Below are positions 3,107 to 60,187 of a stretch of 64,000 nt of DNA, in pieces. A model generated the notes under the pieces. The model was not told the DNA's origin and did not search any database. It was given only the letters and a program-made list of their open reading frames with translations. Position numbers and translations under genes: made by a program. Source of the stretch: Macrostomum lignano (taxonomy: Eukaryota); assembly GCA_002269645.1 (NCBI GenBank), contig NIVC01000087.1, positions 682,001 through 746,000 of the forward strand, read 5' to 3'. Position 1 is the first letter of the stretch; each line of letters opens with the position of its first letter.

Positions 3107-3262
3107 CTTGAGTTTATGAATTCGAAATGCGTTTGTATCAAAATATTTAACAAACTGATACTTTCTGTCAATGTTCTATTGATTCTACCAATAGTAGTGA
3201 CAATTGGAAAATTACGTTAGAAAAATCTCTTTTCCAGAATATCCCTAAGACTCCGGCCTCAC

Positions 3263-4123
3263 CATGTGGTTAAACAGAGCGTCAGTGTCCGAGCCGCAGT
3301 CCCGGACGCCTTCCAGCTCAATCAGCATGTCGCCAGACGATGACGACACGATGCTCGCCAGCGACGCCGTGCTGGAGGAACCCGCCAGGCTGGCCGCGGC
3401 AGCCGCCGTCGCCGACAGCAGAAGCAGCTGCTTGGCACCGGCGATGGCGTCGCCGACAAGGCCGCGACTGATTCGCTGCAGCTCGTCCTCCGCATCCTCC
3501 TTGGCGTACGCTGAGGACCCCGGCGACGGGGAGCGGGTGCAATCCAGTGATTGGGTTGCGTCCGATCTGTCAGCCGCCGCCGCCGCCGCTGCTGCTGTCG
3601 TCTCAGCCTCGGCCTGGGCCTGCTCAGCGACCAGCTGGGAGATGACGCTGGCCATAGTCAGCTGCACAATTTCCGCGCTGATCCGGTTCAGAGCGGCCTC
3701 TTCGTCTGATTGCTCATCTGCCGCTGCTTCCGCTGCAGCTCCTCCATTGCTAGGCGTCGCTGGAGTGGTGGAGCGGGACGCCGAGCCGCTGTCCTGCCGG
3801 TAAACCGCATCCGAGCTCTCCGACGCCGTTGTTGTGTCTCCGCCTGCGTAGCGCAGAGTCTGCGGTGGTTGCGGCTGCGGCGGCGGCAGCATCGGCGCGC
3901 CAGACTGCGGCGCCAGCAGGTCGAACGCGCTGCCGAGCTCCTCGCGCAGAGCGGCGGCTCGCAATTGGACCTCCTCATCCGCCGTCGGGAGGTCCTCATC
4001 GATGCTGTCAAGCCGGGACCCGCTGGGCACCGGGGAGCTGGGCGTCGGGGACATCGCCAGGGCGGCTGAGGATAGCGGCACCGGGATGTACTGGCCCGCC
4101 AGCTGCGGCGTGGACAGGTTCGA
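3263..4123 (-). CDS. MPDZ: MPDZ-like 287-aa low-complexity (Ala/Ser/Glu-rich) linker exon
   Basis: Inside ORF 3245..4225(-). Polypyrimidine tract plus cccccag acceptor at 4124, ATG|gtgagg donor at 3262. Phase 0 to 0. Confidence 0.85.
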
Positions 4124-4204
4124 CTGGGGGCAAGAGGAGGAGGGCAGTTGAGCCAGGTTGAGTACTTCCGACATGTTTGTCGTTGGGGACCAAAGTAAGT
4201 ACGC

Positions 4205-4365
4205 AGTAGACAAGCTTCCGAACAACCCTCAAGACACGTCAAGACAAGCTTCAGGACAACCCTCTAGACATGTCAAAACAAGCTTCAGGACAACCATCAA
4301 GACACGACAAGGCAAGCTTCATGACAAACCTCAAGACACGTTAGAACAAGCTTCAGGACAACCCT
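4205..4365. repeat. Degenerate ~33-bp tandem repeat (about 5 copies)
   Basis: Recurring GACAAGCTTCAGGACAACCCTC(A/T)AGACAC, filling part of the 4124-4507 intron. Confidence 0.8.
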
Positions 4366-4507
4366 CTTGGAGGGCACCCACCAAGACACCAGATATTTTG
4401 CTCCCCTCAGGGTTTGGGGCCGCCCCAATAAAAAATCAACACACAAGTCACGCTACCCAACAAAAAGCGGCACCCAAAAAGCCCAGAGCGAGCCAGCCTT
4501 GTCGCAC

Positions 4508-5173
4508 CTTTTTCCTCGTCATTCTGTCCTGCCTGGCCGCGGCGGCCTCGGCAGCCTTGGCCGCCCGCCGTTCCGCCTGCGCCAGCGGGCACGGCTTGGC
4601 CACGCCGAGGACGATCCGGCCGCGAGGCGCCGCCTTCAGGCAGTGGACGGTCTCCTCCAGGCTCGCCCGCTCCAAGTTGGTCTCGTTAACGAACAGCAGC
4701 CTGTCGCCGGGCAGCAGGCGGCCGTCCCGGTGGGCGGCTCCGCCAGGAACGAGACTGCGGATGATGATGACGGTCTGCTCGGCGCACAGTGGGTCCTGAT
4801 AATCCAGGACGCTGAAGCCCAGGCCTGCCGGCGTCTTGTCCAGCTCAACAACTGTCGGCCGGTTCGACCAGACGCCCGTGTTGGAGAAATCGCCAATCGA
4901 GCGGCTCTTCTGACCCTGGCCGGAGCCGGTAGTTCCGGCTGATGCCACCGGAGCTGGCTTCGCCTGAAGCAGCATCTCCACGTCTTCTGCCACCGCCTGG
5001 CAGCCGTTGGTGTCGATTTCTGTGTCGGCTGGTTCCGCTCCCGGCGCAGCTTCCGGTTGCAGCGATTCCTGTTCGAGTCGCCTGGCGCAGACGATGCGCA
5101 CGTGACGGGGTAGGGACTTTAAAATGTCGACCACCTCCAGGTGGTTTAAGCCATAGAGTCTCTTGCCGTTTAC
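4508..5173 (-). CDS. MPDZ: MPDZ-like exon: C-terminal half of PDZ4 plus complete PDZ5
   Basis: VNGKRLYGLNHLEVVDILKSLP...GLGFSVLDYQDPLCAEQTVIIIRSLVPGGAAHRDGRLLPGDRLLFVN...GVAKP closely matches MPDZ/PATJ PDZ5 (GLGFSILDYQDP). Acceptor cctgtccag, donor AAG|gtgcga. Confidence 0.95.
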
Positions 5174-6338
5174 CTGGACAGGGTTAAGCATGATTATAGA
5201 AAAAGATTAATAGAACTATTACAGATTTTCCTAGAAAGTCTGACTTAACCTCACAAACTAAGCCGGTGATAAAATAAAGGCAGTTCTGTTACGAGTAAAT
5301 ATCCCCCCCTCCTATTTGATACGTAGAGAATCCTGTCACGTTCTTGATCACATCGTTACAGATTCGCAGCACGGCATGTGCTTTGCCATTTTTTGTCTTC
5401 TTTTAAAGTCTCCCCTCGTTCCGCCAGTCCTCCTCTGCGTTGCTCCAGCTGCCCCCCCCTGCTTCAGCCGATTCCTCCCCCCAAGTTCCGCTTTTTTGCG
5501 TGCGAGGAAAACACGGGGGCCGGGGAGTTGCTATACTGCGGCGCTGAGGAGAATTAATTGGGTGGAGCGGCGGCTGGGGAGCCTGGCAGCGCTGGATGCC
5601 GGGACTCGGATGCTGGGGGGAGGGGGGGGAACAGAACGAACTCAGGCAAGTAAGGCGAGCCCAGACTCAAGCTCCAACTGAAACTCTCAACCAGAGTAAA
5701 GCTTGGGAGAGAGAGAGAGAGAGAAGGTGAAGTTTGAACAGAGCGTTTAGGATTCAGGGACTTCTTAGCATCTAGCATTCTGGATTAGAATGCTACTCAA
5801 CAACATTTACAAATGACAAGAAGAAATCGTTTTAATTTTTATAATCCATTGAAGGTGACGGGCCAGGAATCCTAGGATGTGGTATTTCAAGTTTATGAAA
5901 CCACCACCACTGAAACCAGTGCACCGCAAAGGCCTCTAAAAGTCTGTCTTTTTATGCAGTCCAGATGCTATATTGAGAAGTCCCTGGATACGAGTATTAG
6001 AGCGGAAAGGAGAGGAGAAGAGGGAAAAAGTTCAAGCAAGTGGAGCTGAACCAGTATAAAGCGACCTCTCGGGCCCTCAGACCCAGGCAGACCCGAGATC
6101 CCCAATGGTTAAGCCGCGTAACGAATTGCTGGCCGCTGCAAGTCAGCCGGCCTGCCATCGCTCAGCTGCTGCACAGGAGGGGAGCAGCGGAAATTTCATT
6201 TTGAAACTCCTCGTTGCTTCTCTCCCGGCTCAGCTGTTGGGCAAAGAACGAAATTTTATTAAATAGATTTTCTTCAACTATGCCGCGTTTCCGCTCTGTC
6301 TCTTCTTTATTAGTTTCTTTTTCTACTGCAGTTCGTAG

Positions 6339-22186: not shown

Positions 22187-22834
22187 AGATGCAGTGGGGT
22201 TGGTGAGAACCCTAGATCCCGTTACTCCTTAGCGATTTTCTTTTTGAAACTGTTCGGATCTTGAGGCTAATATTATTGATTGTCTGTCTTTGTGGAAGGA
22301 GGATTAGCCCCCCCCCCCAGCCTGCAGCAGCGGTAGTAGCAAGACATACAGAGTGTCTGAGCGAACTGCTGGCGCTGGGAAGGCGAGGTGGGAATAATAT
22401 ATATTTTTTTCTTGAGCCCGGCAGGGCAGCCATTGCAGCTGAAAACTTTGGTCCCGCCTGCTCGGTCTTGGAGCTCGCGCTTGGCTCATGTCCAAGGGGA
22501 GAGGGGCAGGAGGGCTTTTCTTTCTTTCAAGCACAAAATCAATAATGCACTCAGACTAGCGAGGCCTCCCCTCTGGGGGAAGGGGGGGTTGCGAACCAGT
22601 TCAGCTCAGCACCCTCTGGCAAACACCCTCTTCACCCTCCCATGGGGTCCGCTGTTTTATATTATATACAATATTTGAGTTGGCTTCTTAATCTTCTTGG
22701 CAAAGACACTGGCTGGGCGGAGGCTACCAAGGACACGTAAGAGCCAGAGTCTGGAGTGGAAAATTTCCCCCCTAGGACACACTATCAAGCTTACTTGAGT
22801 TTCTCAGCTTATACGTACGAATCATACGTACGTT

Positions 22835-25800
22835 GTAGCCCAGAGGGGTTGCAGCCTAGAGGGGGTTGTAGCCTAGAGGGGGTTGTAGCCTAGAGGGGGT
22901 TGTAGCCTAGAGGGGGTTGTAGCCTAGAGGGGGTTGTAGCCTAGAGGGGGTTGTAGCCTATAGGGGTTGTAGCCTAGAGGGGGTTGTAGCCTAGAGGGGG
23001 TTGTAGCCTAGAGGGGGTTGTAGCCTAGAGGGGGTTGTAGCCTAGAGGGGGTTGTAGCCTAGAGGGGGTTGTAGCCTAGAGTGGGTTGTAGCCTAGAGGG
23101 GGTTGTAGCCTAGAGGGGGTTGTAGCCTAGAGGGGGTTGTAGCCTAGAGGGGGTTGTAGCCTAGAGGGGGTTGTAGCCTAGAGGGGGTTGTAGCCTAGAG
23201 GGGGTTGTAGCCTAGAGGGGGTTGTAGCCCTCTAGGGGGTTGCAGCCTAGAGGGGGTTGTAGCCTAGAGGGGGTTGTAGCCTAGAGGGGGTTGTAGCCTA
23301 GAGGGGGTTGTAGCCTAGAGGGGGTTGTAGCCTAGAGGGGGTTGTAGCCTAGAGGGGGTTGTAGCCTAGAGGGGGTTGTAGCCTAGAGGGGGTTGTAGCC
23401 TAGAGGGGGTTGTAGCCTAGAGGGGGTTGTAGCCTAGAGGGGGTTGTAGCCTAGAGGGGGTTGTAGCCTAGAGGGGGTTGTAGCCTAGAGGGGGTTGTAG
23501 CCTAGAGGGGGTTGTAGCCTAGAGGGGGTTGTAGCCTAGAGGGGGTTGTAGCCTAGAGGGGGTTGTAGCCTAGAGGGGGTTGTAGCCCTCTAGGGGGTTG
23601 CAGCCTAGAGGGGGTTGTAGCCTAGAGGGGGTTGTAGCCTAGAGGGGGTTGTAGCCTAGAGGGGGTTGTAGCCTAGAGGGGGTTGTAGCCTAGAGGGGGT
23701 TGTAGCCCTCTAGGGGGTTGTAGCCTAGAGGGGGTTGTAGCCCTCTAGGGGGTTGCAGCCTAGAGGGGGTTGTAGCCTAGAGGGGGTTGTAGCCTAGAGG
23801 GGGTTGTAGCCTAGAGGGGGTTGTAGCCTAGAGGGGGTTGTAGCCTAGAGGGGGTTGTAGCCTAGAGGGGGTTGTAGCCTAGAGGGGGTTGTAGCCTAGA
23901 GGGGGTTGTAGCCTAGAGGGGGTTGTAGCCTAGAGGGGGTTGTAGCCTAGAGGGGGTTGTAGCCTAGAGGGGGTTGTAGCCTAGAGGGGGTTGTAGCCTA
24001 GAGGGGGTTGTAGCCTAGAGGGGGTTGTAGCCTAGAGGGGGTTGTAGCCCTCTAGGGGGTTGCAGCCTAGAGGGGGTTGTAGCCTAGAGGGGGTTGTAGC
24101 CTAGAGGGGGTTGTAGCCTAGAGGGGGTTGTAGCCTAGAGGGGGTTGTAGCCTAGAGGGGGTTGTAGCCTAGAGGGGGTTGTAGCCTAGAGGGGGTTGTA
24201 GCCTAGAGGGGGTTGTAGCCTAGAGGGGGTTGTAGCCTAGAGGGGGTTGTAGCCTAGAGGGGGTTGTAGCCTAGAGGGGGTTGTAGCCTAGAGGGGGTTG
24301 TAGCCTATAGGGGGTTGTAGCCTAGAGGGGGTTGTAGCCTAGAGGGGGTTGTAGCCTAGAGGGGGTTGTAGCCTAGAGGGGGTTGTAGCCTAGAGGGGGT
24401 TGTAGCCTAGAGGGGGTTGTAGCCTAGAGGGGGTTGTAGCCTAGAGGGGGTTGTAGCCTAGAGGGGGTTGTAGCCTAGAGGGGGTTGTAGCCTAGAGGGG
24501 GTTGTAGCCCTCTAGGGGGTTGCAGCCTAGAGGGGGTTGTAGCCTAGAGGGGGTTGTAGCCTAGAGGGGGTTGTAGCCTAGAGGGGGTTGTAGCCCAGAG
24601 GGGGTTGTAGCCTAGAGGGGGTTGTAGCCTAGAGGGGGTTGTAGCCTAGAGGGGGTTGTAGCCTAGAGGGGGTTGTAGCCTATAGGGGGTTGTAGCCTAG
24701 AGGGGGTTGTAGCCTAGAGGGGGTTGTAGCCTAGAGGGGGTTGTAGCCTAGAGGGGGTTGTAGCCTAGAGGGGGTTGTAGCCTAGAGGGGGTTGTAGCCT
24801 AGAGGGGGTTGTAGCCTAGAGGGGGTTGTAGCCTAGAGGGGGTTGTAGCCTAGAGGGGGTTGTAGCCTAGAGGGGGTTGTAGCCTAGAGGGGGTTGTAGC
24901 CTAGAGGGGGTTGTAGCCTAGAGGGGGTTGTAGCCTAGAGGGGGTTGTAGCCTATAGGGGGTTGTAGCCTAGAGGGGGTTGTAGCCTAGAGCGGGTTGTA
25001 GCCTAGAGGGGGTTGCAGCCCAGAGGGGGTTGTAGCCTAGAGGGGGTTGTAGCCTAGAGGGGGTTGTAGCCTAGAGGGGGTTGTAGCCTAGAGGGGGTTG
25101 TAGCCTATAGGGGGTTGTAGCCTAGAGGGGGTTGTAGCCTAGAGGGGGTTGTAGCCTAGAGGGGGTTGTAGCCTAGAGGGGGTTGTAGCCTAGAGGGGGT
25201 TGTAGCCTAGAGGGGGTTGTAGCCTAGAGGGGGTTGTAGCCTAGAGGGGGTTGTAGCCCTCTAGGGGGTTGCAGCCTAGAGGGGTTGTAGCCTAGAGGGG
25301 GTTGTAGCCTAGAGGGGGTTGTAGCCTAGAGGGGGTTGTAGCCTAGAGGGGGTTGTAGCCTAGAGGGGGTTGTAGCCTAGAGGGGGTTGTAGCCTAGAGG
25401 GGGTTGTAGCCCTCTAGGGGGTTGCAGCCTAGAGGGGGTTGTAGCCTAGAGGGGGTTGTAGCCTAGAGGGGGTTGTAGCCTAGAGGGGGTTGTAGCCAGA
25501 GGGGGTTGTAGCCTAGAGGGGGTTGTAGCCTAGAGGGGGTTGTAGCCTAGAGGGGGTTGTAGCCTAGAGGGGGTTGTAGCCTAGAGGGGGTTGTAGCCTA
25601 GAGGGGGTTGTAGCCTAGAGGGGGTTGTAGCCTATAGGGGGTTGTAGCCTAGAGGGGGTTGTAGCCTAGAGCGGGTTGTAGCCTAGAGGGGGTTGCAGCC
25701 CAGAGGGGGTTGTAGCCTAGAGGGGGTTGTAGCCTAGAGGGGGTTGTAGCCTAGAGGGGGTTGTAGCCTAGAGGGGGTTGTAGCCTATAGGGGGTTGTAG

Positions 25801-25888
25801 CCTAGAGGGGGTTGTAGCCTAGAGGGGGTTGTAGCCTAGAGGGGGTTGTAGCCTAGAGGGGGTTGTAGCCTAGAGGGGGTTGTAGCCT
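22835..25888 (+). repeat. 17-bp satellite (AGGGGGTTGTAGCCTAG)n, about 180 copies
   Basis: A 3-kb array with recurring variants (..CCCTCTAGGGGGTTGCAG.., ..CCTATAGG..). Confidence 0.98.
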
Positions 25889-25967
25889 TGAGGGTGTGCT
25901 TTCACAAGGTCGAAATTTCACAACACCGAAAACTTAATATAACAAGAACCATGCAGTAGTTTTCTAC

Positions 25968-26022
25968 GCTGTGAAGTTTCGACCTTGTGAAGTTTCGACC
26001 TTGTGAAGCTTCGACCTTGTGA
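25968..26022. repeat. 16-bp repeat (GTGAAGTTTCGACCTT), 3-4 copies
   Basis: Direct reading of the sequence. Confidence 0.85.
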
Positions 26023-26086
26023 AAGTGGTTGCTATTTGAGTTTTCGATGTTATGAAATTTCGTTGTGAAATTTCGAGTTTGTGAAA

Positions 26087-26190
26087 CCCCCCTCCCCGGG
26101 TGGCGACCCCCAGTCCTTGGACTGAACAGCCGTACGCAGCCTTCAGATGTGCCGCGCAATAGCTGCGGCTGAGCTGTCGGTTGCACATCT
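26087..26190 (+). mobile_element. SINE family A 3' fragment
   Basis: GGCGACCCCCAGTCCTTGGACTGAACAGCCGTACGCAGCCTTCAGATG..GTTGCACATCTG, nearly identical to 60088-60178. Confidence 0.8.
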
Positions 26191-26664
26191 GCTTAATTGA
26201 CTAAGGATTTTGCTGATCGAAAAAAAATTATTATTATATAGTATGCTCTATCGGATTTCTTGAGAGTATACTAAATGCACTTGCGATACGACAGATAGCA
26301 ACAAGAGCAGCAACTAAAATCAGCCTAATCTTGTCTTGAACACGGGCATTCGGGAAAAAGTTGGCACTCTACTCGTACTTTCTGGTCTCGGGTCTTCTTG
26401 GCGCAGCTGTCCAGAGGGGACGAGACCTGGGACTGAGTCAAAGAGAGCGCTTTCACCACAGAAGGACTAACTGAAGGTTCCAATGTCACTACTGTTTTTT
26501 AACCGTATTTTAAGTAGTAACAACTGAAAGCATCTCGATAATTTTTATTTTTGCGCTTTAAAATTTAATAACAATACTCACCATAAGTCAATTCTACAGA
26601 GTTCAATGTAAATTGCGAAATTTGTCGGTTTTGCCATAGACTAAAGCTTTGAACAAATGAAAAC

Positions 26665-26693
26665 CAAGGACCACTAGAATCTAGTGGTCCTTG
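26665..26693. mobile_element. 29-bp TIR-only element or footprint with an 8-bp TSD
   Basis: CAAGGACCACTAG-aat-CTAGTGGTCCTTG is a perfect 13-bp inverted repeat, flanked on both sides by ATGAAAAC (26657-26664, 26694-26701). Confidence 0.75.
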
Positions 26694-27835
26694 ATGAAAA
26701 CACATAATTTGCTTGGCTATGCGGTAAAACTCTAAATCGGACGCGAATGAAAGACCAACTACACCTTTTCACGTTCAATTTTGATCAAAGTCCAGTTCTA
26801 AAAGAACTAGCGGAAATTCAATTCAGACAATTCAGACTGGGGAAAGTTTTGTCTATGGCTAAACCTTGCTTCAGTAGCAGAATGTTTTGAACAGGATTTT
26901 GTTTTTATTGATTTTCCGTAAGCGTTGCCCCAGTCTGAATTGTCTGAATTGTCTGAATTGTCTAAACAGAAAATCTCGGAGATAAAGTTTCGATTTTTAA
27001 AAACCTTGCTGCAAAGGACAAAGGAAGTTCTAGTAAAGTTCATCAAATATTTGATCGACACAAGCGCCAAAATGCAACTGTCTCGAGATAGCATACTGGT
27101 ACAGAAGAAAATAGGCTTGAGATACTCGTTTGCGTACGAGACATTGGATATCTGTTTTCTAGCTTAGCACACAAATACTAGAATAACTACTAGATGGGGG
27201 CCACTCAGCACATTTGCGTGTAAGCTACTTTTAGTTCAGTAGCAAGTTAAACAAAAGCATTTTAATGTATTTTTAAAGCCAAGGCTCATTTATTGGCTCT
27301 TACCCCCAGCTTAAACCCTCCAACTGCGCGTTTCCACACTACCCCCTCCGCCCCGCCTCAATTTTTATTGCCTTACTCGAAATTCCAGCCGAAAACTGCC
27401 ATGTACATTTCAGTGGACTGGCTAATGTACATTATTGCTGAACCAATTAGCAAGTTGTTTACGCCTGCAAGCTCGGGCTGCTTGACTTATCAATATCGTT
27501 TCAGCTGGCTTCATTCTTATAAAATAGCTTATGTATTCTTCTTTGCTACTGAACTGAAATTAGAAAGCTGTTTTACTAAGTATATGCCTGTGGCTTAGCA
27601 CGACAAAAGCAATTTCTGTGATTAAATCTAAGCAATTAAAAGCAGCCCAAAATTCTGTTTCTACAATTGACAGTTGTTTCCACAGAAAAGTTTTGGTTGG
27701 GAAATTTGCCTCTGAGTGGACAAGTTCTATAAAAATTCCTTGTCAGCAAGAAGTGCATTCCGCTGGCCCCTGAGCAGCACACGGATACGTATGGAGGCAC
27801 ACTGGGTTCATCGCTGCCGAATCGAAGTCGATTTT

Positions 27836-28115
27836 TTATTACACCTGCCCAAATGGGCAGAGGTGCAACCGACAGCTCAGCCGCAGCTATTGAACGGTGG
27901 CGCATCTCTGAAGGCTGCCCTGTTCGGGGTCGCCGCACACACCCTCAATTACACCCCAGCTAATGCTGGCACCCATTTTACAGCTGGGTGAACTGGAGAA
28001 ATGCAAAGTTAAGTGACGTGCTCATTGACACAGTTTGTTCCGAGTGGGTCGGGAATCGAGCCCCTGACCTTTCAGTCGTGAGTCCCACGTTCTCCACCTC
28101 TAGGCTGCAACCCCC
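27836..28115 (-). mobile_element. SINE family A copy whose 5' end runs into a 17-bp array
   Basis: Reverse complement of the family consensus. The head is contiguous with the array at 28100-28380. Confidence 0.85.
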
Positions 28116-28380
28116 TCTAGGCTACAACCCCTCTAGGCTGCAACCCCCTCTAGGCTACAACCCCTCTAGGCTGCAACCCCCTCTAGGCTACAACCCCTCT
28201 AGGCTGCAACCCCCTCTAGGCTACAACCCCTCTAGGCTGCAACCCCCTCTAGGCTACAACCCCTCTAGGCTGCAACCGCTTCTAGGCTGCAACTGCCTCT
28301 AGGCTGCAACCCTCTTTAGGCTGCAACCCCCTCTAGTCTACAACCTCCCCTAGGCTGCAACCCCGTCTAGGCTACAACCC
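28100..28380 (-). repeat. 17-bp satellite in inverted orientation, about 17 copies
   Basis: CTAGGCT(G/A)CAACCCC(C)T repeats, the reverse complement of the 22835-25888 unit. Confidence 0.95.
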
Positions 28381-28425
28381 GTATTAATATATAATAAATA
28401 CATGTAATACTGTATTTATACTGTA

Positions 28426-29394
28426 CTTCGGGTGTGTCATAAGTAATGTCACTGCAGGCCTCTGTCTAAAATATGTAGGCACATGGACTTGTGGGTAGTG
28501 TAGCTGCAAAGTATACTTAGTGAAGCAATAGCAGTGCATTTGAGACGTGCATAGGTTGTTTATGGCCCAAGCTATCGCAAGAATACGCCAAGCAGATTTA
28601 GCAAGTGCAACGCGATGAAAAACCGTCCATGCAGCGAACAAAAATCACCATGAATCTCGACATGACGCCTGCACCAAGCAGATCCGCAAGGTGTTTAGCA
28701 GCCGGGGCTTGAATGACATCCTAAACTGCCTGGTTGCTGAGGATGAAAGCTGGCTCCACCTGGATGGCAAGGGCAGCAAGGCAGACAATCGCTGCTGGCT
28801 GGGAGCTGGGGACTCCAGGCCGATGGTGACTAGGAAGTCCATCTTGGACAAGAAGACCATGCTGCTGGTAGCCTTCACGCCAAACAAACGAGTCTCCATC
28901 TGCACAACTCCACCGAACACCAAGGTCGATGGCCAGTATTTTATCGACTTTGTCCGGCACACTGGAGACCTCTGGCGCACTCTCCGGTCAAATCCATGTC
29001 ACCTGGACGAAGTTCTGTGGCAGATGGACACCGCACGGCTGCACATCTGAAGGCTGTTTCGAATTTTCTGCCTGTACGGCGAGTGAATATGCTCTGACAG
29101 AGTCCCTATAGCCCGGACTTCAACTTTTGCAAGAGATTCCTGTTCAAATGGCTGAAGGCTGACTTTTCCAAGAAGAGTTGCAAACCATGAAGAGGTCAAA
29201 CAGGCCACGTTGCACTGGTTACGGCAGTTGGAGGAAAAACACCTGCAGGCTGAGGTGGACAAGCTGTATGAGCACCTCCAGAGGGTGATTGATATTGGGG
29301 GACTCTATGCTGTTGAGTGCTACAGTTTTGTTAATCTGCGATTGCAAGTTCGTCTGTTTTCACATCAGTGACATTACTTATGACACACCCGAAG
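28426..29394 (+). mobile_element. Internally deleted, inactive Tc1/mariner DNA transposon
   Basis: Perfect 29-bp TIRs (CTTCGGGTGTGTCATAAGTAATGTCACTG at 28426-28454 and its reverse complement at 29366-29394), with TA on both sides. Transposase remnants EDESWLH, WQMDTARLH and QSPYSPDFN are present. The N-terminal DNA-binding region is missing and there are stops and frameshifts. Confidence 0.92.
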
Positions 29395-29618
29395 TATTTA
29401 ATGATAAGATCCTACTGTATTTAATGATAATGATAAGATAAGATAATGATAATGATAATGATAAGATGATAAATTATACTGTATTTAATGATAAGATTGG
29501 GCAATAGCTCTTAGCATTGTTGCAATTGTAAAGGACAAGCAGAGTAGTCGATGCACAGCTACAAACATACCACTCAATTACTGGTAATGCAAAGCAATCT
29601 CCTACTAATAGTATTTAC

Positions 29619-30143
29619 CTGTTCAGCTGCAGCTTGCTGATCAACCTTTGCATCTGAAATTGCATCCGCGTCAGTCTGCCCGTCTTCCGCAGTAGCACCA
29701 GCCTCATCTTCACTAGTAGCACCAGCATGCAGTGTTTCCGTGTCAGCGTCAGCCTCCGCGTCTGGATGAAGCGCCGCTAGCAGCTGCTCCAGGTGGTCGT
29801 CGAGCTCGACAGTGGGCACCAGCTGGCAGAGCGGGTGGCCCTCGAGTCCCGCCACGCTGTCCGCCGGGTCCTGCAGCGCCCGGGCGACAACCAGTCGGAC
29901 GTGTTCGCCGCTCTGCCGGAGCACCGTGGCCACCTGCTCGCTGCTCATGCCGCGCACGCCGACTCCGCCGATGCAGACAATGTGGTCGCCGGAGCGAAGG
30001 CGGCCGTCTTGATCGGCGATGCCGCCAGGCAGGATGGTGCGCACCACCACCCCGGTGCTCTTGCTGCCGATGATGCCGAAGCCGAGGCCCGTGCCGTCAT
30101 TCAACAAGTCGACGACCTCGATCTCAGTCCAGTCGGTGTTCAG
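29619..30143 (-). CDS. MPDZ: MPDZ-like exon: PDZ2 equivalent (Drosophila Patj PDZ1)
   Basis: [81 protein letters not shown]. Acceptor gatccag, donor CAG|gtaaat. Confidence 0.95.
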
Positions 30144-30262: not shown

Positions 30263-31228
30263 AGTTGAGCTTTGACAGATTGGGAGAATGGTAATGACTG
30301 AGGAGAGTGACGGTTGTGACAGATAAGGAGAATAGTAAAGACTGAGGAGAGTGACAGTTGTGACAGATTGGGAGAATGGTAATGACTGAGGAGAGTGACG
30401 GTTGTGACAGATAAGGAGAATAGTAAAGACTGTGGAGAGTGACATTTGTGACATATTTGGAGAATGGTAAAGACTGGGGAGAGTGACAGTTGTGACAGAT
30501 TGGGAGAATAGTAAAGACTGGGGAGAGTGACAGTTGTGACAGATTGGGAGAATGGTAAAGACTGAGGAGAGTGACAGTTGTGACAGATTAGGAGGATGGT
30601 AAAGACTGGGGAGAGTGACAGTTGTGACAGATTGGGAGAATGGTAAAGAAGAGAATTAAAGTTGTGACAGATTAGGAGAATGGTAATGACTGAGGAGAGT
30701 GACATTTGTGACAGATTGGGAGGATGGTAAAGAAGAGAATTAAAGTTGTGACAGATTAGGAGAATGGTAAAGACTGGGGAGAGTGACAGTTGTGACAGAT
30801 TGGGAGATTGGTAAAGACTGAGGAGAGTGACAGTTGTGACAGATTGGGAGAATGGTAAAGACTGAGGAGAGTGACAGTTGTGACAGATTGGGAGAATGGT
30901 AAAGACTGTGGAGAGTGACAGTTGTGACAGATTAGGAGGATGGTAAAGACTGAGGAGAGTGACAGTTGTGACAGATTGGGAGAATGCTAAAGACTGGGGA
31001 GAGTGACAGTTGTGACAGATTAGGAAGATGGTAAAGACTGAGGAGAGTGACAGTTGTGACAGGTTGGGAGAATGGTAAAGACTGAGGAGAGTGACAGTTG
31101 TGACAGATTAGGAGAATGGTAAAGACTGAGGAGAGTGACAGTTGTGACAGATTGGGAGAATGGTAAAGACTGAGGAGAGTGACAGTTGTGACAGATTGGG
31201 AGAATGGTAAAGACTGAGGAGAGTGACA
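30263..31228. repeat. 44-bp minisatellite, array 1 (about 22 copies)
   Basis: Unit GACTGAGGAGAGTGACAGTTGTGACAGATTGGGAGAATGGTAAA. Confidence 0.95.
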
Positions 31229-31669: not shown

Positions 31670-31853
31670 CTTAGACTTTGGGGTCTAAGGCAACCAACCC
31701 CCCCGTAGACTTTGGGGTCTAAGGCAACCAACCCTTCGTAGACTTTGGGGTCTAAGGCAACCAACCCCCCCGTAGACTTTGGGGTCTAAGGCAACCAACC
31801 CCCCCGTAGACTTTGGGGTCTAAGGCAACCAACCCCCCCCGTAGACTTTGGGG
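31670..31853. repeat. ~34-bp minisatellite, 5 copies
   Basis: Unit AGACTTTGGGGTCTAAGGCAACCAACCCCCCCGT. Confidence 0.93.
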
Positions 31854-32595
31854 TTTCCCCACTCTCGGACCGCTTTCCAAAATTTTTCGCGCGCACACTC
31901 GGGTTTTGTCGTTGGGGGGGGGGGGTGTGGCGTGGACTCGGTCTAGCACCAGGCCTTGTTCCTGGTCCCAATCTGGGCCGCTCGGGCTATATGCTCTGAC
32001 ACCTGTTGAGTTGACTGGTTTGCCCAGTCACACGGGTACTTGAAAAGGAGACTCGTAAACCCTGATGATTTCTGGGCAAATTCATGCCTAAAGCAGTTAT
32101 TGTGTGTGAGAGCCTGAATTCCATCCTTGCTCTGGTATCTCCACGGTTGACTCCAAGGCGCCACTCGTAAAATGCTAATTTGTTCAGAAGTTATCCAGAA
32201 AATTTATTATTTTAGTGGGAGCGACTGAATCTAAATTTGGGTCAGTTTTTTCTCTATCCGTTCTGCAGGCTTTGAAGATTTCAGTTCATTCAGAGGGCAG
32301 GAGCTACATGGCTGGGAATCAATGGCAAACTAGCTGAGACAGTTCACAATGATTTATCGATTAGACTGGCAGGGAGGCGGCTGAAACTTGAGCTCAACCT
32401 ACTGAGGTGGTCCACGCCAAATTTTGCTCAGCGTTTTTTTACTAGTGTAATGAGCGCCCGCACCGCTGCGCTTGTGGAAGATGGAATGGCTCGCGAAGGA
32501 CATTGACGTTGACAAAATACAAGCTGACATTAACTAATTGGCTTTGCTTATGAGAGGGAAATGATTTTAGACATGAGTTGGAAACATTAAGACTG

Positions 32596-33566
32596 ACACA
32601 GAGTGACAGTTGTGACGGATTGGGAGAATGGTAAAGACTGAGGAGAGTGACATTTGTGACAGATTGGGAGAATGGTAGACTGAGGAGAGTGACAGTTGTG
32701 ACAGATTGGGAGAATGGTAGACTGAGGAGAGTGACAGTTGTGACAGATTGGGAGAATGGTAGACTGGGGAGAGTGACAGTTGTGACGGATAGGGAGAATG
32801 GTAATGACTGAGGAGAGTGACATTTGTGACAGATTGGGAGAATGGTAGACTGAGGAGAGTGACAGTTGTGACAGATTGGGAGAATGGTAAAGACTGAGGA
32901 GAGTGACATTTGTGACAGATTGGGAGAATGGTAGACTGAGGAGAGTGACAGTTGTGACAGATTGGGAGAATGGTAAAGACTGAGGAGAGTGACAGTTGTG
33001 ACAGATTGGGAGAATGGTAGACTGGGGAGAGTGACAGTTGTGACAGATTGGGAGAATGGTAAAGACTGAGGAGAGTGACAGTTGTGATAGATTGGGAGAA
33101 TGGTAAAGACTGAGGAGAGTGACAGTTCTGACAGATTGGGAGAATGGTAGACTGAGGAGAGTGACGGTTGTGACAGATTAGGAGAATGATAAAGACTGAG
33201 GAGAGTGACAGTTGTGACAGATTGGGAGAATGGTAAAGACTGAGGAGAGTGACGGTGTGACAGATAAGGAGAATAGTAAAGACTGTGGAGAGTGACAGTT
33301 GTGACAGATTTGGAGAATGGTAAAGACTGGGGAGAGTGACAGTTGTGACAGATTGGGAGAATAGTAAAGACTGAGGAGAGTGACAGTTGTGACAGATTGG
33401 GAGAATGGTAAAGACTGGGGAGAGTGAAAGTTGTGACAGCTTAGGAGAATGGTAAAGACTGAGGAGAGTGACATTTGTGACAGATTAGGAGGATGGTAAT
33501 GATTGAGGAGAGTGATAGTTCTGAGAGATCGGGAGAATGGTAAAGACTGGGGAGAGTGACAGTTGT
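32596..33566. repeat. 42-44-bp minisatellite, array 2 (same family as 30263-31228)
   Basis: Same unit, with many copies lacking two As (GGTAGACTG). Confidence 0.95.
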
Positions 33567-35014: not shown

Positions 35015-35293
35015 ATTCCGAACGGCTAGAGCGTTGGCTCACGACTGAAAGGTCTGAAGTTCGATTCCCGAACCACTCGGAACAAGCTGTGTCCTTGAGC
35101 AAAACACTTAGCTCTGCATTTGCTTCAGTTCACCCAGCTGTAAAATGGGTGCCAGCATTAGCTGGGGTAATTGAGGGTGTGTGACGACCCCCCAGTCCTT
35201 GGACTGAACAGCCGTACGCAGCCTTCAGATGCTCCATGCCACCGTTCAATAGCTGCGGCTGAGCTGTCGGCTGCATACTATTATTATTACTAC
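35015..35293 (+). mobile_element. SINE family A copy
   Basis: CTAGAGCGTTGGCTCACGACTGAAAGGTC..GTTCGATTCCC..CCAGCTGTAAAATGGG..GCTGAGCTGTCGG plus a TATTATTATTA tail. Confidence 0.85.
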
Positions 35294-43103: not shown

Positions 43104-43646
43104 TCTCAGAGACAAGAATACTCAGAGACAAGAATACTCAGAGACAAGAATACTCAGAGACAAGAATACTCAGAGACAAGAATACTCAGAGACAAGAATA
43201 CTCAGAGACAAGAATACTCAGAGACAAGAATACTCAGAGACAAGAATACTCAGAGACAAGAATACTCAGAGACAAGAATACTCAGAGACAAGAATACTCA
43301 GAGACAAGAATACTCAGAGACAAGAATACTCAGAGACAAGAATACTCAGAGACAAGAATACTCAGAGACAAGAATACTCAGAGACAAGAATACTCAGAGA
43401 CAAGAATACTCAGAGACAAGAATACTCAGAGACAAGAATACTCAGAGACAAGAATACTCAGAGACAAGAATACTCAGAGACAAGAATACTCAGAGACAAG
43501 AATACTCAGAGACAAGAATACTCAGAGACAAGAATACTCAGAGACAAGAATACTCAGAGACAAGAATACTCAGAGACAAGAATACTCAGTGACAAGAATA
43601 CTCAGAGACAAGAATACTCAGAGACAAGAATACTCAGAGACAAGAA
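43104..43646. repeat. 16-bp minisatellite, about 34 near-perfect copies
   Basis: Unit CTCAGAGACAAGAATA. Confidence 0.97.
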
Positions 43647-43788: not shown

Positions 43789-44097
43789 TAATATAATAAT
43801 AATAATAATTGATTACACCTGCCCTAATGGCCAGATGTGCAACTGACAGCTCAGCCGCAGCTATTGCGCGGCGCATCTGAAGGCTGCGTACGGCTGTTCA
43901 GTCCAAGCACTGGGGGGTCGCCACACAGCCTCAGTTACCCCAGCTAATGCTGGCACCCATTTTACAGCTGGGTGAGCTGCAGCAATGCAGGGTTAAGTGA
44001 CTTGTTCAAGGACACCAATTGTTCCTGGTGGGTCGGGAATCGAACCCCTGACCTACCAGTCGTGAGTCAGACGCTCTAACCACTAGAATACAATCCC
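43789..44097 (-). mobile_element. SINE family A copy, full length with (ATT)n tail
   Basis: Reverse complement of the family consensus from head GGGATTGTATTCTAGTGGTTAGAGCG to CAGGTGTAATCA plus an ATT microsatellite tail. Confidence 0.85.
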
Positions 44098-48260: not shown

Positions 48261-48493
48261 GGATTGCAGCCTAGTGGTTAGAGCGTCTGACTCACGACTG
48301 AAAGGTCGGGGGTTCGATTCTCGACCCACCTGGAACAATCTGTGTCCTTGAGCAAGACCTTATCTCTGCATTTCCTCCAGCGGTAAAATGGGTGCCAGCA
48401 TTAGCTGGGGTTAATGAGGGTGTGTGTGGAGACCACCCAGTCCTTGGAATGAACAGCCGTACGCAGCCTTCAGATGCGCCGAGCAATAGCTGC
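48261..48493 (+). mobile_element. SINE family A copy, 3' truncated
   Basis: GGATTGCAGCCTAGTGGTTAGAGCG..GGTTCGATTC..GTAAAATGGGTGCCAGCATTAGCTGGGG..GCAGCCTTCAGATGCGCC. Confidence 0.85.
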
Positions 48494-48640
48494 GTGAAGG
48501 GTCAACTGACTCCCTTGTGAGAGAGTGAAGGGTCAAGTGACTCCCCCTATGAGAGAATGAAGGTCAGCTGACTCCCCCTGTGAGAGAGTGAAGGGTCAGC
48601 TGACTCCCCCTGTGAAAGAGTGAAGGGTCAGCTGTGAGAG
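48494..48640. repeat. ~32-bp repeat, 4 copies, directly after a truncated SINE
   Basis: GTGAAGGGTCAGCTGACTCCCCCTGTGAGAGA. Confidence 0.85.
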
Positions 48641-50493: not shown

Positions 50494-52233
50494 GTTGCAG
50501 GACACTCAGCGAAATTCTGAATTTCCACTCAGCTGTATATTATGCAAGCTTATAAGTTGCTTTTGATTATTAAAGCTTTTGAAAAATTGCAGCACATTGT
50601 TGGTCAAACTCGGAGTGTTCAATAAACACAATTCGCTGAAAGCACCATGCACAGTCAGCCATGCACGACTCAATTGTCCTGAAAATAAGAGATTTAAATC
50701 GGGAGGGGAAGATTTACTGTTAGTACTGCGCGATTGTCCTAATCCGCTAAGCACACTGCGTGGCGTCAGTGCAAGCGCGGCAGGGCAACATGTGACCAGC
50801 GGCTTTACCTTTTAGCTGGAGATAGATCAAGGGTAGCCGGAAGTCCAGTGTGGGCTGGTGGAAGTTGGAAGGTGGGTGAGGAGAGTACACTACTGTATTC
50901 ATTTAATTTCACAGAATTCAGTACAGTTTTTTCTTCAGCAGTGTACAAAAACCTCACAAAAATGAAAGCAGAGTCAAGTCTTACTGAGCAGTTAGCGCTG
51001 CTCAAAAAGATGATTTACAATTTGAGCCTAGCAACAAGAATCAGCAGCTAGGAAGTCAATCAGGCCTGTTTCATAACCCAGTTCCTTATGATGAATTAAC
51101 GGTGGAAGGAAGGGCTTGGACGGTCCTTTGAGAAATGAGAATTTTCACTTACGGTAAAAATAGGCGGCCGGCTGATAATATAAAACATTTATATTTCGTT
51201 TAATAAAGTTTAATTTTCTCATATTTTTACTGTTAGTAGACATACGCATAACTAGTATGTCAAAAAATTAGTAAAATTCTTGTTTAACGTTAACGAGGTG
51301 GCAACGTTGACAAATGGGCCGCTGTCCTGTACACATCGTTCAAATCCTTTAGCTGTCGGAAAGTCAGAGGATTTTTTGGTTTTATGGATCAGGTGTAAAA
51401 AAGCAATTGGTAGCTGCACATGGTCTGTGAAGGAATGGCCAGAAACGACTATTGCTTGCTACATAGTACGTACACGTAATTACTATAATTAGACTACAAA
51501 CAATTGACTTTTTATTATTTTGTATTGCATAGCTTCAGGATAGGCAAATTCTAGAAGCAAGACCTTTTTACATTAGGTAATCTTCGGTATTAGGTATTCT
51601 TCAGGTAGAGGCTTAGCGTTGTTTTAAGAATAACAATGCAATGTATTTTATTATAATTATCAAATTAGCCAGAGTTTATTCTAACACACGAGAAATACTT
51701 CAACTGCAATTTGACATGTATTTTACAAACCGAAATCCTTGGGCTGGATTAAATAAAATAATCAATTTCATTGAACCCTAAAGAGGGGACTTATCTCTCT
51801 GATGTAAATGCAAAATGCATACTGGCATAGCAGGCAGACTACACTGTATACAGTGCCGTAATGTAAAATACTACAAATGGCAATATTCCCAATAATAGTC
51901 AAGATAAATAGTAGACAAACCTTATTTGGTTACCGTACGTACGACGGTAACCGTTTCGCTATTTATTAGTAACCGTAACAACTGTCAAAATAACTTCATA
52001 ATCTAATCATTGAATGCAAAATAGTATCAAGACATTGAGTAGACACTAAATAAATCATGCTTGCTACGACCTACGTAAAAGAGCATAGCCAATGATCAAT
52101 GCGGGTACTAACTAGCTGTGTTTTTTTCTACCACATTAATTAATCGTAGGCCTACACATAAAATAAAATCGATAAGAAAAATTAATTAATAATAGAGCGA
52201 GAGCAAATCGAATTGGCATCAAATAAATTTGGT

Positions 52234-52249
52234 GGCCCTGAAAAGGGCC
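52234..52249 (-). promoter_or_regulatory. Histone mRNA 3' stem-loop
   Basis: Minus strand reads AAAAC-GGCCCTTTTCAGGGCC-ACC, 63 nt after the stop codon. This is the canonical 6-bp stem, 4-nt loop consensus. Confidence 0.95.
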
Positions 52250-52312
52250 GTTTTAGCGTTCAGTAACTAGTTAAAACTTGGACAAGGCTTTGCCGCTTGA
52301 CGATTGAGCAGC

Positions 52313-52735
52313 TTAGAACTCCTGGCTGGGGCCAGCCTTCTTGCCGCTGCTGGCCTTGCTGCTACCAGAGGCACCGCTCTTCTTTGGCAGCAGGACAGCC
52401 TGGATGTTAGGCAGCACACCACCCTGGGCAATGGTGACACCGCTGAGCAATTTGTTCAGCTCTTCGTCGTTGCGGATGGCAAGCTGTAAATGCCGCGGGA
52501 TGATGCGAGTCTTCTTGTTATCGCGAGCAGCGTTGCCGGCAAGCTCGAGCACTTCGGCGGCCAGGTATTCCAGCACAGCCGCTAGGTAGACTGGAGCGCC
52601 AGCGCCAACACGCTCAGCATAGTTGCCTTTGCGCAGTAAGCGATGGATTCGGCCGACTGGAAACTGCAGTCCAGCGCGAGACGAGCGAGTCTTAGCCTTG
52701 GCCTTAGCCTTACCACCTTTGCCGCGTCCAGACAT
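52313..52735 (-). CDS. H2AX: Histone H2A.X-type variant (140 aa, C-terminal SQEF), intronless
   Basis: Canonical H2A core ([55 protein letters not shown]) plus an extended tail ending SQEF, matching the SQ(E/D)-hydrophobic H2A.X motif. Confidence 0.93.
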
Positions 52736-53089: not shown

Positions 53090-53578
53090 CTAATATGTAC
53101 TTTTCAAATTTGTGGCTTCTAAAAATTCGCTTTCGTCTCGTGATAAACTGCACGATTCGGTCGATTCCATACTTTACGAGTCAAGTCTTAGTGCCAGTAG
53201 TTAATTTATGACTTTTTTTCAGTAAAACGGCCCTTTAACGGGCTGCCCGAAACATAGCATGCAATTTTAATTTTACTGGGATTGTGCTTTTTTGCCACAA
53301 ATTACTATTATTTATTAGTTTCGAAATTAAACCTCGAATATGTCTTTATCGAAGTTGTAGCTTCTGAATAATGAGCTTTTTATCTCGTGAAAAAAAACTG
53401 CACGATTACATAGTTTACAGAAGTCGAACCAAAATATTAGCTTTTTTAAGATAAATCGACAGACCCACCCGGGCTGATCTGACGGTAAAAAATGACAAAA
53501 GTCAACCCTCAGTGCCAGCTGCCAATGCCAACAGTAAGTTAAACGGATTGTATTCTGAGTAAAACGGCCCCTTTAAGG
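53090..53578. mobile_element. Two diverged tandem copies of a transposon end terminating in TTAA (possibly Kolobok-like)
   Basis: Both about 53090-53238 and about 53340-53577 share TGT(G/A)GCTTCT..TCTCGTGA..AAACTGCACGATT and end in AGTAAAACGGCCC(C)TTTAA. Confidence 0.4.
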
Positions 53579-59908: not shown

Positions 59909-60187
59909 AGGGGGTTGCAGCCTAGTGATTAGAACGTTGAACTCACGACTGAAGGTCGGGGGTTCGATTCTTGACCTCACTCGGAACAATTTGTGTCCTT
60001 GAGCAGCACACTTAACTCTGCATTGCTTCAGTTCACCCAGCTGTAAAATGGGTGCCAGCATTAGCTGGGGTAATTGAGGGTGTGTGTGGCGACCCCCCAG
60101 TCCTTGGACTGAACAGCCGTACGCAGCCTTCAGATGCGCCGCGCAATAGCTGCGGCTGAGCTGTCCGTTGCACATCTGGCCATTAGG
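59909..60187 (+). mobile_element. tRNA-derived SINE, family A (near full length)
   Basis: Head GGGGGTTGCAGCCTAGTGATTAGAACG (A box), B box GGTTCGATTC, MIR/CORE-like segment (TGTGTCCTTGAGC..CAGTTCACCCAGCTGTAAAATGGG). The 3' tail is shared with five other copies. Confidence 0.85.

Follow-up and report, generated by a model that had tools for sequence, protein, structure and literature searches.

A 17-bp minisatellite probably seeded by the 5′ head of a SINE in the flatworm Macrostomum lignano

Satellites derived from short interspersed elements (SINEs) and minisatellites derived from Alu are already known, and the case reported here, in which two arrays of a 17-bp unit share that unit with the 5′ end of a resident SINE in the genome of the flatworm Macrostomum lignano, is fairly ordinary in kind. 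The sequence analysed is a 64,000-nt stretch, hereafter the window (contig NIVC01000087.1, positions 682001-746000, of assembly GCA_002269645.1, Mlig_3_7). Among the described systems, the closest are the SINE-derived satellites of squamates (sSats), where the terminal unit of an array continues into the SINE to its end, unit subvariants alternate, and longer loci are more homogeneous. Their units measure 67-215 nt, some including box B or the body of the element, and their loci number from tens to thousands, with an enrichment in subtelomeric regions; they have been explained by a primary duplication followed by amplification and concerted evolution (Vassetzky, Kosushkin & Ryskov 2023, PMC10702118). 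Transposable elements account for the origin of 23% of human mini/satellites (Ahmed & Liang 2012, PMC3389668). As that article relays the work of Jurka & Gentles (2006), Alu-derived minisatellites start by short flanking direct repeats or by slippage, with a truncated terminal unit, and the human cases it describes mostly hold from two to a few units, with hotspots internal to Alu. A Nin-SINE origin has also been proposed, in the account of PMC11121367, for PcH-Sat of the limpet Patella caerulea.

The M. lignano arrays are like the squamate satellites in several respects. Their unit is a portion of a resident SINE (the squamate SINEs being of the tRNA type), and their terminal unit extends into the SINE, which is complete at the small array and is reached at the large one after a deletion and an insert. 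There are two alternating subvariants, the longer locus is the more homogeneous, and the same interpretation by duplication and amplification would apply. They differ in that the unit has 17 nt and is the very 5′ terminus, which takes in part of box A, in that two adjacent loci are known, and in the host, a flatworm and not a vertebrate. With the Alu minisatellites, as far as they are summarised in the human survey, they would share a minisatellite-size unit cut from a SINE, local duplication and possibly a start by short direct repeats or slippage, but the M. lignano array reaches 180 units and derives from the 5′ terminus. PcH-Sat, as its source presents it, is likewise a lophotrochozoan tandem repeat traced to a SINE, although it is a conventional satellite with a long monomer. 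What is distinctive in M. lignano is thus how short the unit is and that it stems from the extreme 5′ end, box A being partly included, together with array size and host phylum; no report on M. lignano SINEs or SINE-derived repeats was found in the literature searched.

Tandem arrays were called with Tandem Repeats Finder (TRF), SINE copies were collected by BLAST and alignment with the element at 59909 as query, and the chance expectation for the 17-mer came from dinucleotide-preserving shuffles. An H2A.X gene is encoded on three contigs of the assembly, the window contig and its two collinear homeologs in the neopolyploid M. lignano, NIVC01002917.1 and NIVC01003542.1, which are the source of the stretches L002 and L003. 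The homeolog comparison, made through this gene, covers 42.3-62.7 kb of the window and about 40 kb of homeologous sequence. The two arrays lie inverted, 2.2 kb apart and both within 5.5 kb, where the features are as follows:

22832-25894, plus strand: large 17-bp minisatellite array (TRF: 179.9 copies, 96% matches, consensus GTTGTAGCCTAGAGGGG)
25888-25898, plus strand: junction piece TTGAGGGTGTG, identical by blastn-short at 11/11 positions to SINE consensus 166-176 and collinear with the downstream fragment
25899-26098, no strand assigned: foldback insert of ~200 bp, similar to a miniature inverted-repeat transposable element, with inverted arms of 16-bp subrepeats TGTGAAGTTTCGACCT; it splits the SINE remnant
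26099-26191, plus strand: SINE 3′ fragment matching consensus ~179-270 and oriented like the large array
27836-28116, minus strand: full-length SINE attached to the small array, of a different subfamily, with an A-rich tail (BLAST/alignment span 28116-27852)
28097-28380, minus strand: small 17-bp array (TRF: 17 copies; a 33-bp repeat describes it better)

Both arrays fit the definition of a minisatellite, with head-to-tail units of 10-100 bp over hundreds of bp to kb. The unit, which can be noted as AGGGGGTTGYAGCCTAG or in repeat motif form as GGGGGTTGTAGCCTAGA, corresponds to the 5′-terminal 17 nt of the SINE, AGGGGGTTG[C/T]AGCCTAG. The exact 17-mer AGGGGGTTGCAGCCTAG has 13 matches in the window (seven in the large array, five in the small one and one at 59909-59925), where shuffled sequences predict 0.00, so that the match between unit and SINE head is far beyond chance. 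An earlier note on this DNA had equated the unit with the head of the local SINE. This is exact for the C variant found at 59909, whereas the large array consists mainly of the T variant TTGTAGCC, one base off that head: once the array is parsed into 180 units, 148 of them are identical (TTGTAGCCTAGAGGGGG, which is AGGGGGTTGTAGCCTAG in SINE phase). Position 10 of the head is itself polymorphic (C/T) among the SINEs, with T in the 44097 copy, and since the L003 homeolog of the 59909 copy also reads AGGGGGTTGTAGCCTAG, the T variant is a natural allele of the SINE head.

Five SINE copies and one fragment, with 78-89% mutual identity, are found in the 64 kb. Besides the full-length copy and the fragment already given, they are:

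35027-35275, plus strand: 5′-truncated copy, beginning at consensus ~22 and uninformative on heads
43825-44097, minus strand: single-headed copy that reads T at head position 10, ends in (ATT)n and is flanked by the target-site duplication (TSD) TAAACCATCA/TTAACCATCA; shared by the homeologs
48261-48494, plus strand: copy with a single head, 3′ truncated where a 32-bp array starts; shared by the homeologs
59909-60185, plus strand: reference copy with the single head AGGGGGTTGCAGCCTAG and a TSD-like ATCCTAA(A)CTTG; present on all three homeologs

By its structure, the element, ~280-290 bp in length, is a SINE: it has a promoter of the RNA polymerase III (Pol III) type, dispersed copies, TSDs recognisable at two of them, and tails that are either (ATT)n or A-rich. 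Its consensus carries an A-box-like motif at positions 10-20, [C/T]AGCCTAGTGG (model TRGCNNAGTGG), and at 54-64 a B box, GGTTCGATTCC, which matches GGTTCGANNCC perfectly and stands at tRNA-like spacing. No long interspersed element that could be a partner of the SINE was identified in the window. The label of tRNA-derived SINE that the element had first received agrees with these boxes. In searches for a tRNA, ARAGORN at default settings reports no tRNA gene in the window, and the Rfam tRNA model gives no match at the gathering threshold, at E<=1 for the 59909 copy or at E<=10 for the best-preserved homeologous copy. A tRNA call by ARAGORN appears solely at the 80% threshold and solely on the SINE consensus, so a tRNA ancestry may be called plausible, though weakly supported. 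On the minus strand of the 290-bp consensus one frame is open across all 96 codons; a protein search with its peptide returned no homologues, and the frame is probably open by chance.

The small array runs unit by unit, in phase, into the complete SINE (...TTGTAGCCTAGAGGGGG TTGCAGCCTAGAGG-TGGAGAACG..., minus strand), and its final unit is the head AGGGGGTTGCAGCCTAG of that element, just as the earlier note had described the fusion. This SINE is ~80% identical to the 59909 copy, with indels of its own. Immediately after position 17 it carries an extra AGG, which produces AGGGGG...AGGTGG at 17-bp spacing where the family consensus has TGGTTA in place of AGGTGG; this arrangement can be taken for a short direct repeat, but also for a partial unit cut down to 3 nt. 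At the other locus, the large array terminates in ...GTAGCCT and is followed by TTGAGGGTGTG, with SINE positions ~18-165 absent; array and SINE body share T-GAGGG at the point of this loss. The order is there array, SINE 166-176, foldback insert and SINE ~179-270, all collinear. The 3′ fragment is 96.8% identical to the 59909 copy, and 98.8% to the consensus over 85 nt, and is followed by a divergent A8(TTA)3 tail to ~26250. That an array of the same unit had a SINE 3′ fragment downstream in the same orientation was correctly seen from the start, but the ~200-bp gap between them is not anonymous, as it holds SINE 166-176 and the foldback insert. The insert is recognised by inverted repeats (I2-I7), a direct repeat family (D1) and a TRF row at 25970-26023, and has no other copies in the window or in L002 and L003. 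Because the joins at both loci run from array to SINE in the 5′-to-3′ sense, both arrays lie 5′ of SINE sequence. The two SINEs concerned, members of different subfamilies, face each other across 1.65 kb in convergent orientation.

The internal anatomy of the arrays bears on how they grew. In the large array (3063 bp, with the G-rich strand on plus), eight units of a type that we call e are 18 nt long and carry CCCTCTAGG in place of CCTAGAGGG, that is, a 9-nt core inverted and one added G. Seven of these eight units are followed by a C-variant unit, so this two-unit variant, the pair e b, found 7-8 times, has spread through the array. Moreover, the unit variant map shows a ten-unit variant block, f.h.i....f, which is present twice. 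The repeated block and the repeated pair indicate block duplication or unequal exchange at the DNA level. In the small array (284 bp), the ten inner units are organised as a 33-bp higher-order repeat, made of a 16-nt C unit and a 17-nt T unit, which is perfect, with zero substitutions; it adjoins the SINE and keeps phase with its head. Further out lie six units with mismatches to the unit consensus at ~10% of positions. As the inner units are homogeneous and the outer ones diverged, the units of this array differ in age.

Human CEB1 is a G-rich, G-quadruplex-prone, unstable minisatellite, and one strand of the M. lignano array likewise carries a run of five G every 17 nt. This fits a loose G-quadruplex motif, and 426 of the 450 such motifs in the window fall within the large array. 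The motif may add to the instability of the array, but, unlike CEB1, its loops of 12 nt lie at the weak end for a G-quadruplex, and other arrays of the window expand with no G-runs. Hairpin-driven instability was rejected as a cause, since neither strand of the array folds as well as its shuffled controls do or shows any Watson-Crick hairpin potential.

The setting in which these arrays are found is itself rich in tandem repeats. Minisatellite arrays make up 31% of the window (45 merged arrays, 25 of them of at least 200 bp), an unusually high density; their units are mostly of 11-57 bp, many are >95% homogeneous, and they lie within and between genes. One of them, a 16-bp array of CTCAGAGACAAGAATA at 43105-43646, has 33.9 copies with 99% matches in the window, whereas the same site on the homeologs, both read as reverse complements (L002 ~1345-1380; L003 ~1785-1820), holds only ~1.8 copies, which implies that the array expanded in place after the homeologs diverged. 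Copy numbers of further arrays also vary among the homeologs. When the arrays of the window are scored against the SINE consensus, those of the 17-mer alone reach a good score; the link to the SINE is therefore specific to them, while the process of expansion is general. The 32-bp array that abuts the truncated SINE at 48494 has no similarity to the SINE above the null. The reverse complement of a 29-bp array at 60736-61096 matches SINE consensus 184-210 at 22/27 positions, with a shuffle p of ~5e-4 that is marginal given the ~40 arrays tested; no SINE remnant is visible in its flanks, and its copy number on the three homeologs is 12.4, 6.3 and 16.4. The homeologs also carry a foldback element, similar to Mutator-like elements (MULEs) and of 0.7-1.0 kb, again in reverse-complement coordinates (L002 11036-11763; L003 11039-12013), flanked by the 10-bp TSD GTCTTTATCG. 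It is missing from the window, where the empty site lies at ~53342-53351. Its arms are inverted arrays of a 14-bp subrepeat, CAACTGCCAGCCGA, whose copy number differs between L002 and L003.

We would place at roughly two chances in three the reading in which the arrays are a SINE-derived minisatellite, amplified at the DNA level after insertion of the element. A Pol III-type SINE of ~290 bp would have inserted probably into an intron of a multi-PDZ gene, because exons encoding PDZ domains flank the arrays on both sides on the minus strand (3245-5191 and 29574-30107; Pfam PF00595, E 1e-13 to 1e-14); searches of the protein collection that started from the flanking PDZ exon and from an upstream exon-like open reading frame (ORF) yielded no gene model spanning the arrays. 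Seeding would then have consisted of a DNA-level duplication of the first 17 nt of the SINE, for which the likely route is slipped-strand mispairing of AGGGGG, the G-run at the 5′ end, with AGGTGG/TGG, a similar stretch past position 17. The tandem copies would have been expanded and homogenised by replication slippage, unequal sister-chromatid exchange or gene conversion, the same process that has filled 31% of the window with arrays of 11-57-bp units. This growth step is the one that the anatomy of the arrays and the behaviour of their neighbours support.

Decay may have followed at the large locus, where SINE ~18-165 could have been lost through microhomology between CCTAGAGGG in the array and ATTGAGGG in the SINE body, and the 200-bp foldback element would have entered the SINE remnant. 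The array would most likely have arisen at only one of the two heads, from which template switching or conversion between these inverted heads carried it to the other. A slipped-strand start followed by unequal exchange is favoured by the variant blocks, the higher-order repeat, the diverged outer units and the AGG junction; later unequal exchange, one of the two routes that the earlier note had proposed, thus turns out to be the best fit to the block duplications, the 33-bp repeat and the diverged outer units. The arrays imply no cellular function and can be taken as a by-product of repeat instability.

Several observations weigh against this DNA-level reading. Only two loci are involved, 2.2 kb apart, and the lengths of both arrays come from a single long-read assembly. 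The unit begins exactly at nucleotide 1 of the SINE, at SINEs of two subfamilies; such an exact 5′ boundary is what a template jump of the reverse transcriptase predicts, and a DNA-level model needs either the G-run repeat or a transfer between SINEs. At the outer end of the small array, the units have a divergence close to that among SINE copies, so the first few of them could date from the insertion. The pair AGGGGG...AGGTGG could represent the short direct repeats that bracket the founding unit in the Haber-Louis and Jurka-Gentles model, but it may be either cause or consequence of the array, AGGTGG being possibly a result of it. Finally, no TSD surrounds either array together with its SINE.

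The alternative that stands up best is that 22832-28380 is a single structure, a unit of foldback type whose arms are the 17-mer arrays, either mobile (FB/MULE-like) or formed by an inverted duplication. On this view the arrays would have one origin, and no separate amplification at two SINE heads would ever have taken place. The window holds no other inverted pair of arrays, and the outer ends of these two start in the same phase and with the same T, C, T order of variants, 2.2 kb apart, for which reason the two arrays are probably not independent. FB transposons of Drosophila have inverted arms built of tandem subrepeats, and here, too, a central segment lies between inverted arrays of a short unit, with arms of unequal length. 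Foldback-like elements with tandem-subrepeat arms are present in this genome, both on L002 and L003, where one is polymorphic among homeologs of the same region, and as the 200-bp insert by the large array.

However, unlike FB elements, the M. lignano structure lacks a TSD, terminal unique sequence and, in the sequence read, a second copy, and the inner ends of its arms are two different SINEs: of the features of a foldback-type transposon, the inverted arrays are found and a TSD of ~9-10 bp is not. There is no homology in the flanks outside the arrays, and the arms are very unequal (3063 vs 284 bp). The SINE sequences of the arms come from different subfamilies (the left remnant agrees with the consensus at 98.8% over 85 nt, the right full-length copy with the 59909 copy at ~80%), so the arms are not a simple recent inverted duplication. 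An inverted segmental duplication was rejected, as the outer flanks show homology neither to each other nor to the spacer. A single foldback structure is for these reasons unlikely, yet it has to be weighed seriously against two separate amplifications, as has a transfer between the inverted SINE heads.

A little harder to credit is an origin coupled to insertion, in which the reverse transcriptase of a long interspersed element, on reaching the 5′ end of the SINE RNA, would have jumped back repeatedly to about position 17 and laid down tandem heads, any later growth of the array being secondary. The coincidence of the unit boundary with the first SINE nucleotide at two elements of different subfamilies is what recommends it, together with the outer units of the small array, whose divergence is similar to that of SINE copies and a few of which may be of insertion age. 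Re-priming of the enzyme at the RNA 5′ end had been put forward in the earlier note, but as the main mechanism it fares badly. An array of 180 units and 3 kb, ten times the length of the SINE and with duplicated variant blocks, cannot come from one reverse transcription event. The product of a template jump would have units of equal age, an intact proximal head and few copies, whereas in the small array the inner units are identical and the outer ones diverged, the head next to the SINE is disturbed by the extra AGG, and the copies of the large array are many. Three other insertions of head-bearing SINEs, each on three homeologs, have exactly one head, and the growth of the 16-mer array in place, from ~2 to 34 copies, also speaks against it. 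TSDs enclosing array and SINE, which had been expected if the array formed during insertion, are missing at both loci (none of at least 7 nt), although this cannot separate the models, because a duplication of the first 17 nt after insertion would also leave the 5′ TSD outside the array.

That the arrays travel with the SINE, with transcription by Pol III sometimes starting one or more units upstream in an array-bearing source gene and yielding multi-head daughters that expand later, is very unlikely. Every unit does hold a near-consensus A box (TAGCCTAGAGG vs TRGCNNAGTGG), the T-variant unit in array context matching it at 10/11 positions, the B box GGTTCGATTCC stands at tRNA-like spacing from the true head, and arrays occur at SINEs of two subfamilies. 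Nevertheless, no other SINE copy in the window or its homeologs has two heads, and two subfamilies would require two such source genes. Lastly, it is scarcely believable that the pattern is a misassembly of long reads, or that the unit came from a non-SINE source such as a tRNA gene: one assembly was examined, and tandem-array lengths are error-prone in long-read assemblies, but the variants of the arrays are ordered and non-random, the 17-nt identity is exact and continues in phase into the SINE body against an expectation of 0.00, and ARAGORN finds no tRNA gene in the window.

A broader version of the case, improbable on present data, would have the SINE head programmed to seed G-rich minisatellites again and again across the M. 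lignano genome, with heads added at insertion by template jumps of the reverse transcriptase or by upstream Pol III starts and then expanded. Arrays are found at two of the five head-bearing SINE loci, the other three being single-headed on three homeologs each. If the idea were true, SINE retrotransposition would be a direct source of the unusual minisatellite load of this species. Exact scans for the conserved SINE segment in metagenome contigs, and for a two-unit array pattern in metagenome contigs and prokaryote genomes, gave no match.

Under the favoured reading of post-insertion amplification, the two loci would offer a clean and datable example of the passage from transposon to tandem repeat in a flatworm model, one of them with the SINE complete and the other with most of it lost, and the Pol III-promoter end of a SINE, besides its 3′ tail, could yield an array of kilobase scale. 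The most useful by-product is the evidence that minisatellites of M. lignano are born and grow on the time-scale of homeolog divergence: three homeologous contigs allow the birth of arrays to be timed, as for the 16-mer that went from 2 to 34 copies, and the species can be used to ask why some genomes make minisatellites at a very high rate. On the practical side, intronic arrays will hamper assembly, read mapping and the design of transgenes or CRISPR experiments in M. lignano.

Other features of the window accompany the arrays. At 28424-29396, beginning 43 bp beyond the outer end of the small array, lies an element of ~970 bp with perfect 31-bp terminal inverted repeats (28424-28454 / 29366-29396); an ORF inside it, at 28691-29050, has by eye the look of a mariner-type transposase remnant and has no Pfam match. 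A 44-bp unit forms two direct arrays of ~1 kb, at 30273-31228 and 32588-33566, separated by 1.36 kb in which there is a 34-bp array (31672-31854), and the pair looks like one array split by an insertion. The H2A.X-type histone gene through which the homeologs were compared is located at 52313-52735 on the minus strand; it is intron-less, ends in a C-terminal SQEF and has a canonical histone 3′ stem-loop downstream of it (Rfam RF00032, 34.7 bits), gene and stem-loop together spanning 52209-52735, and an identical H2A.X protein is encoded on the three homeologous contigs.

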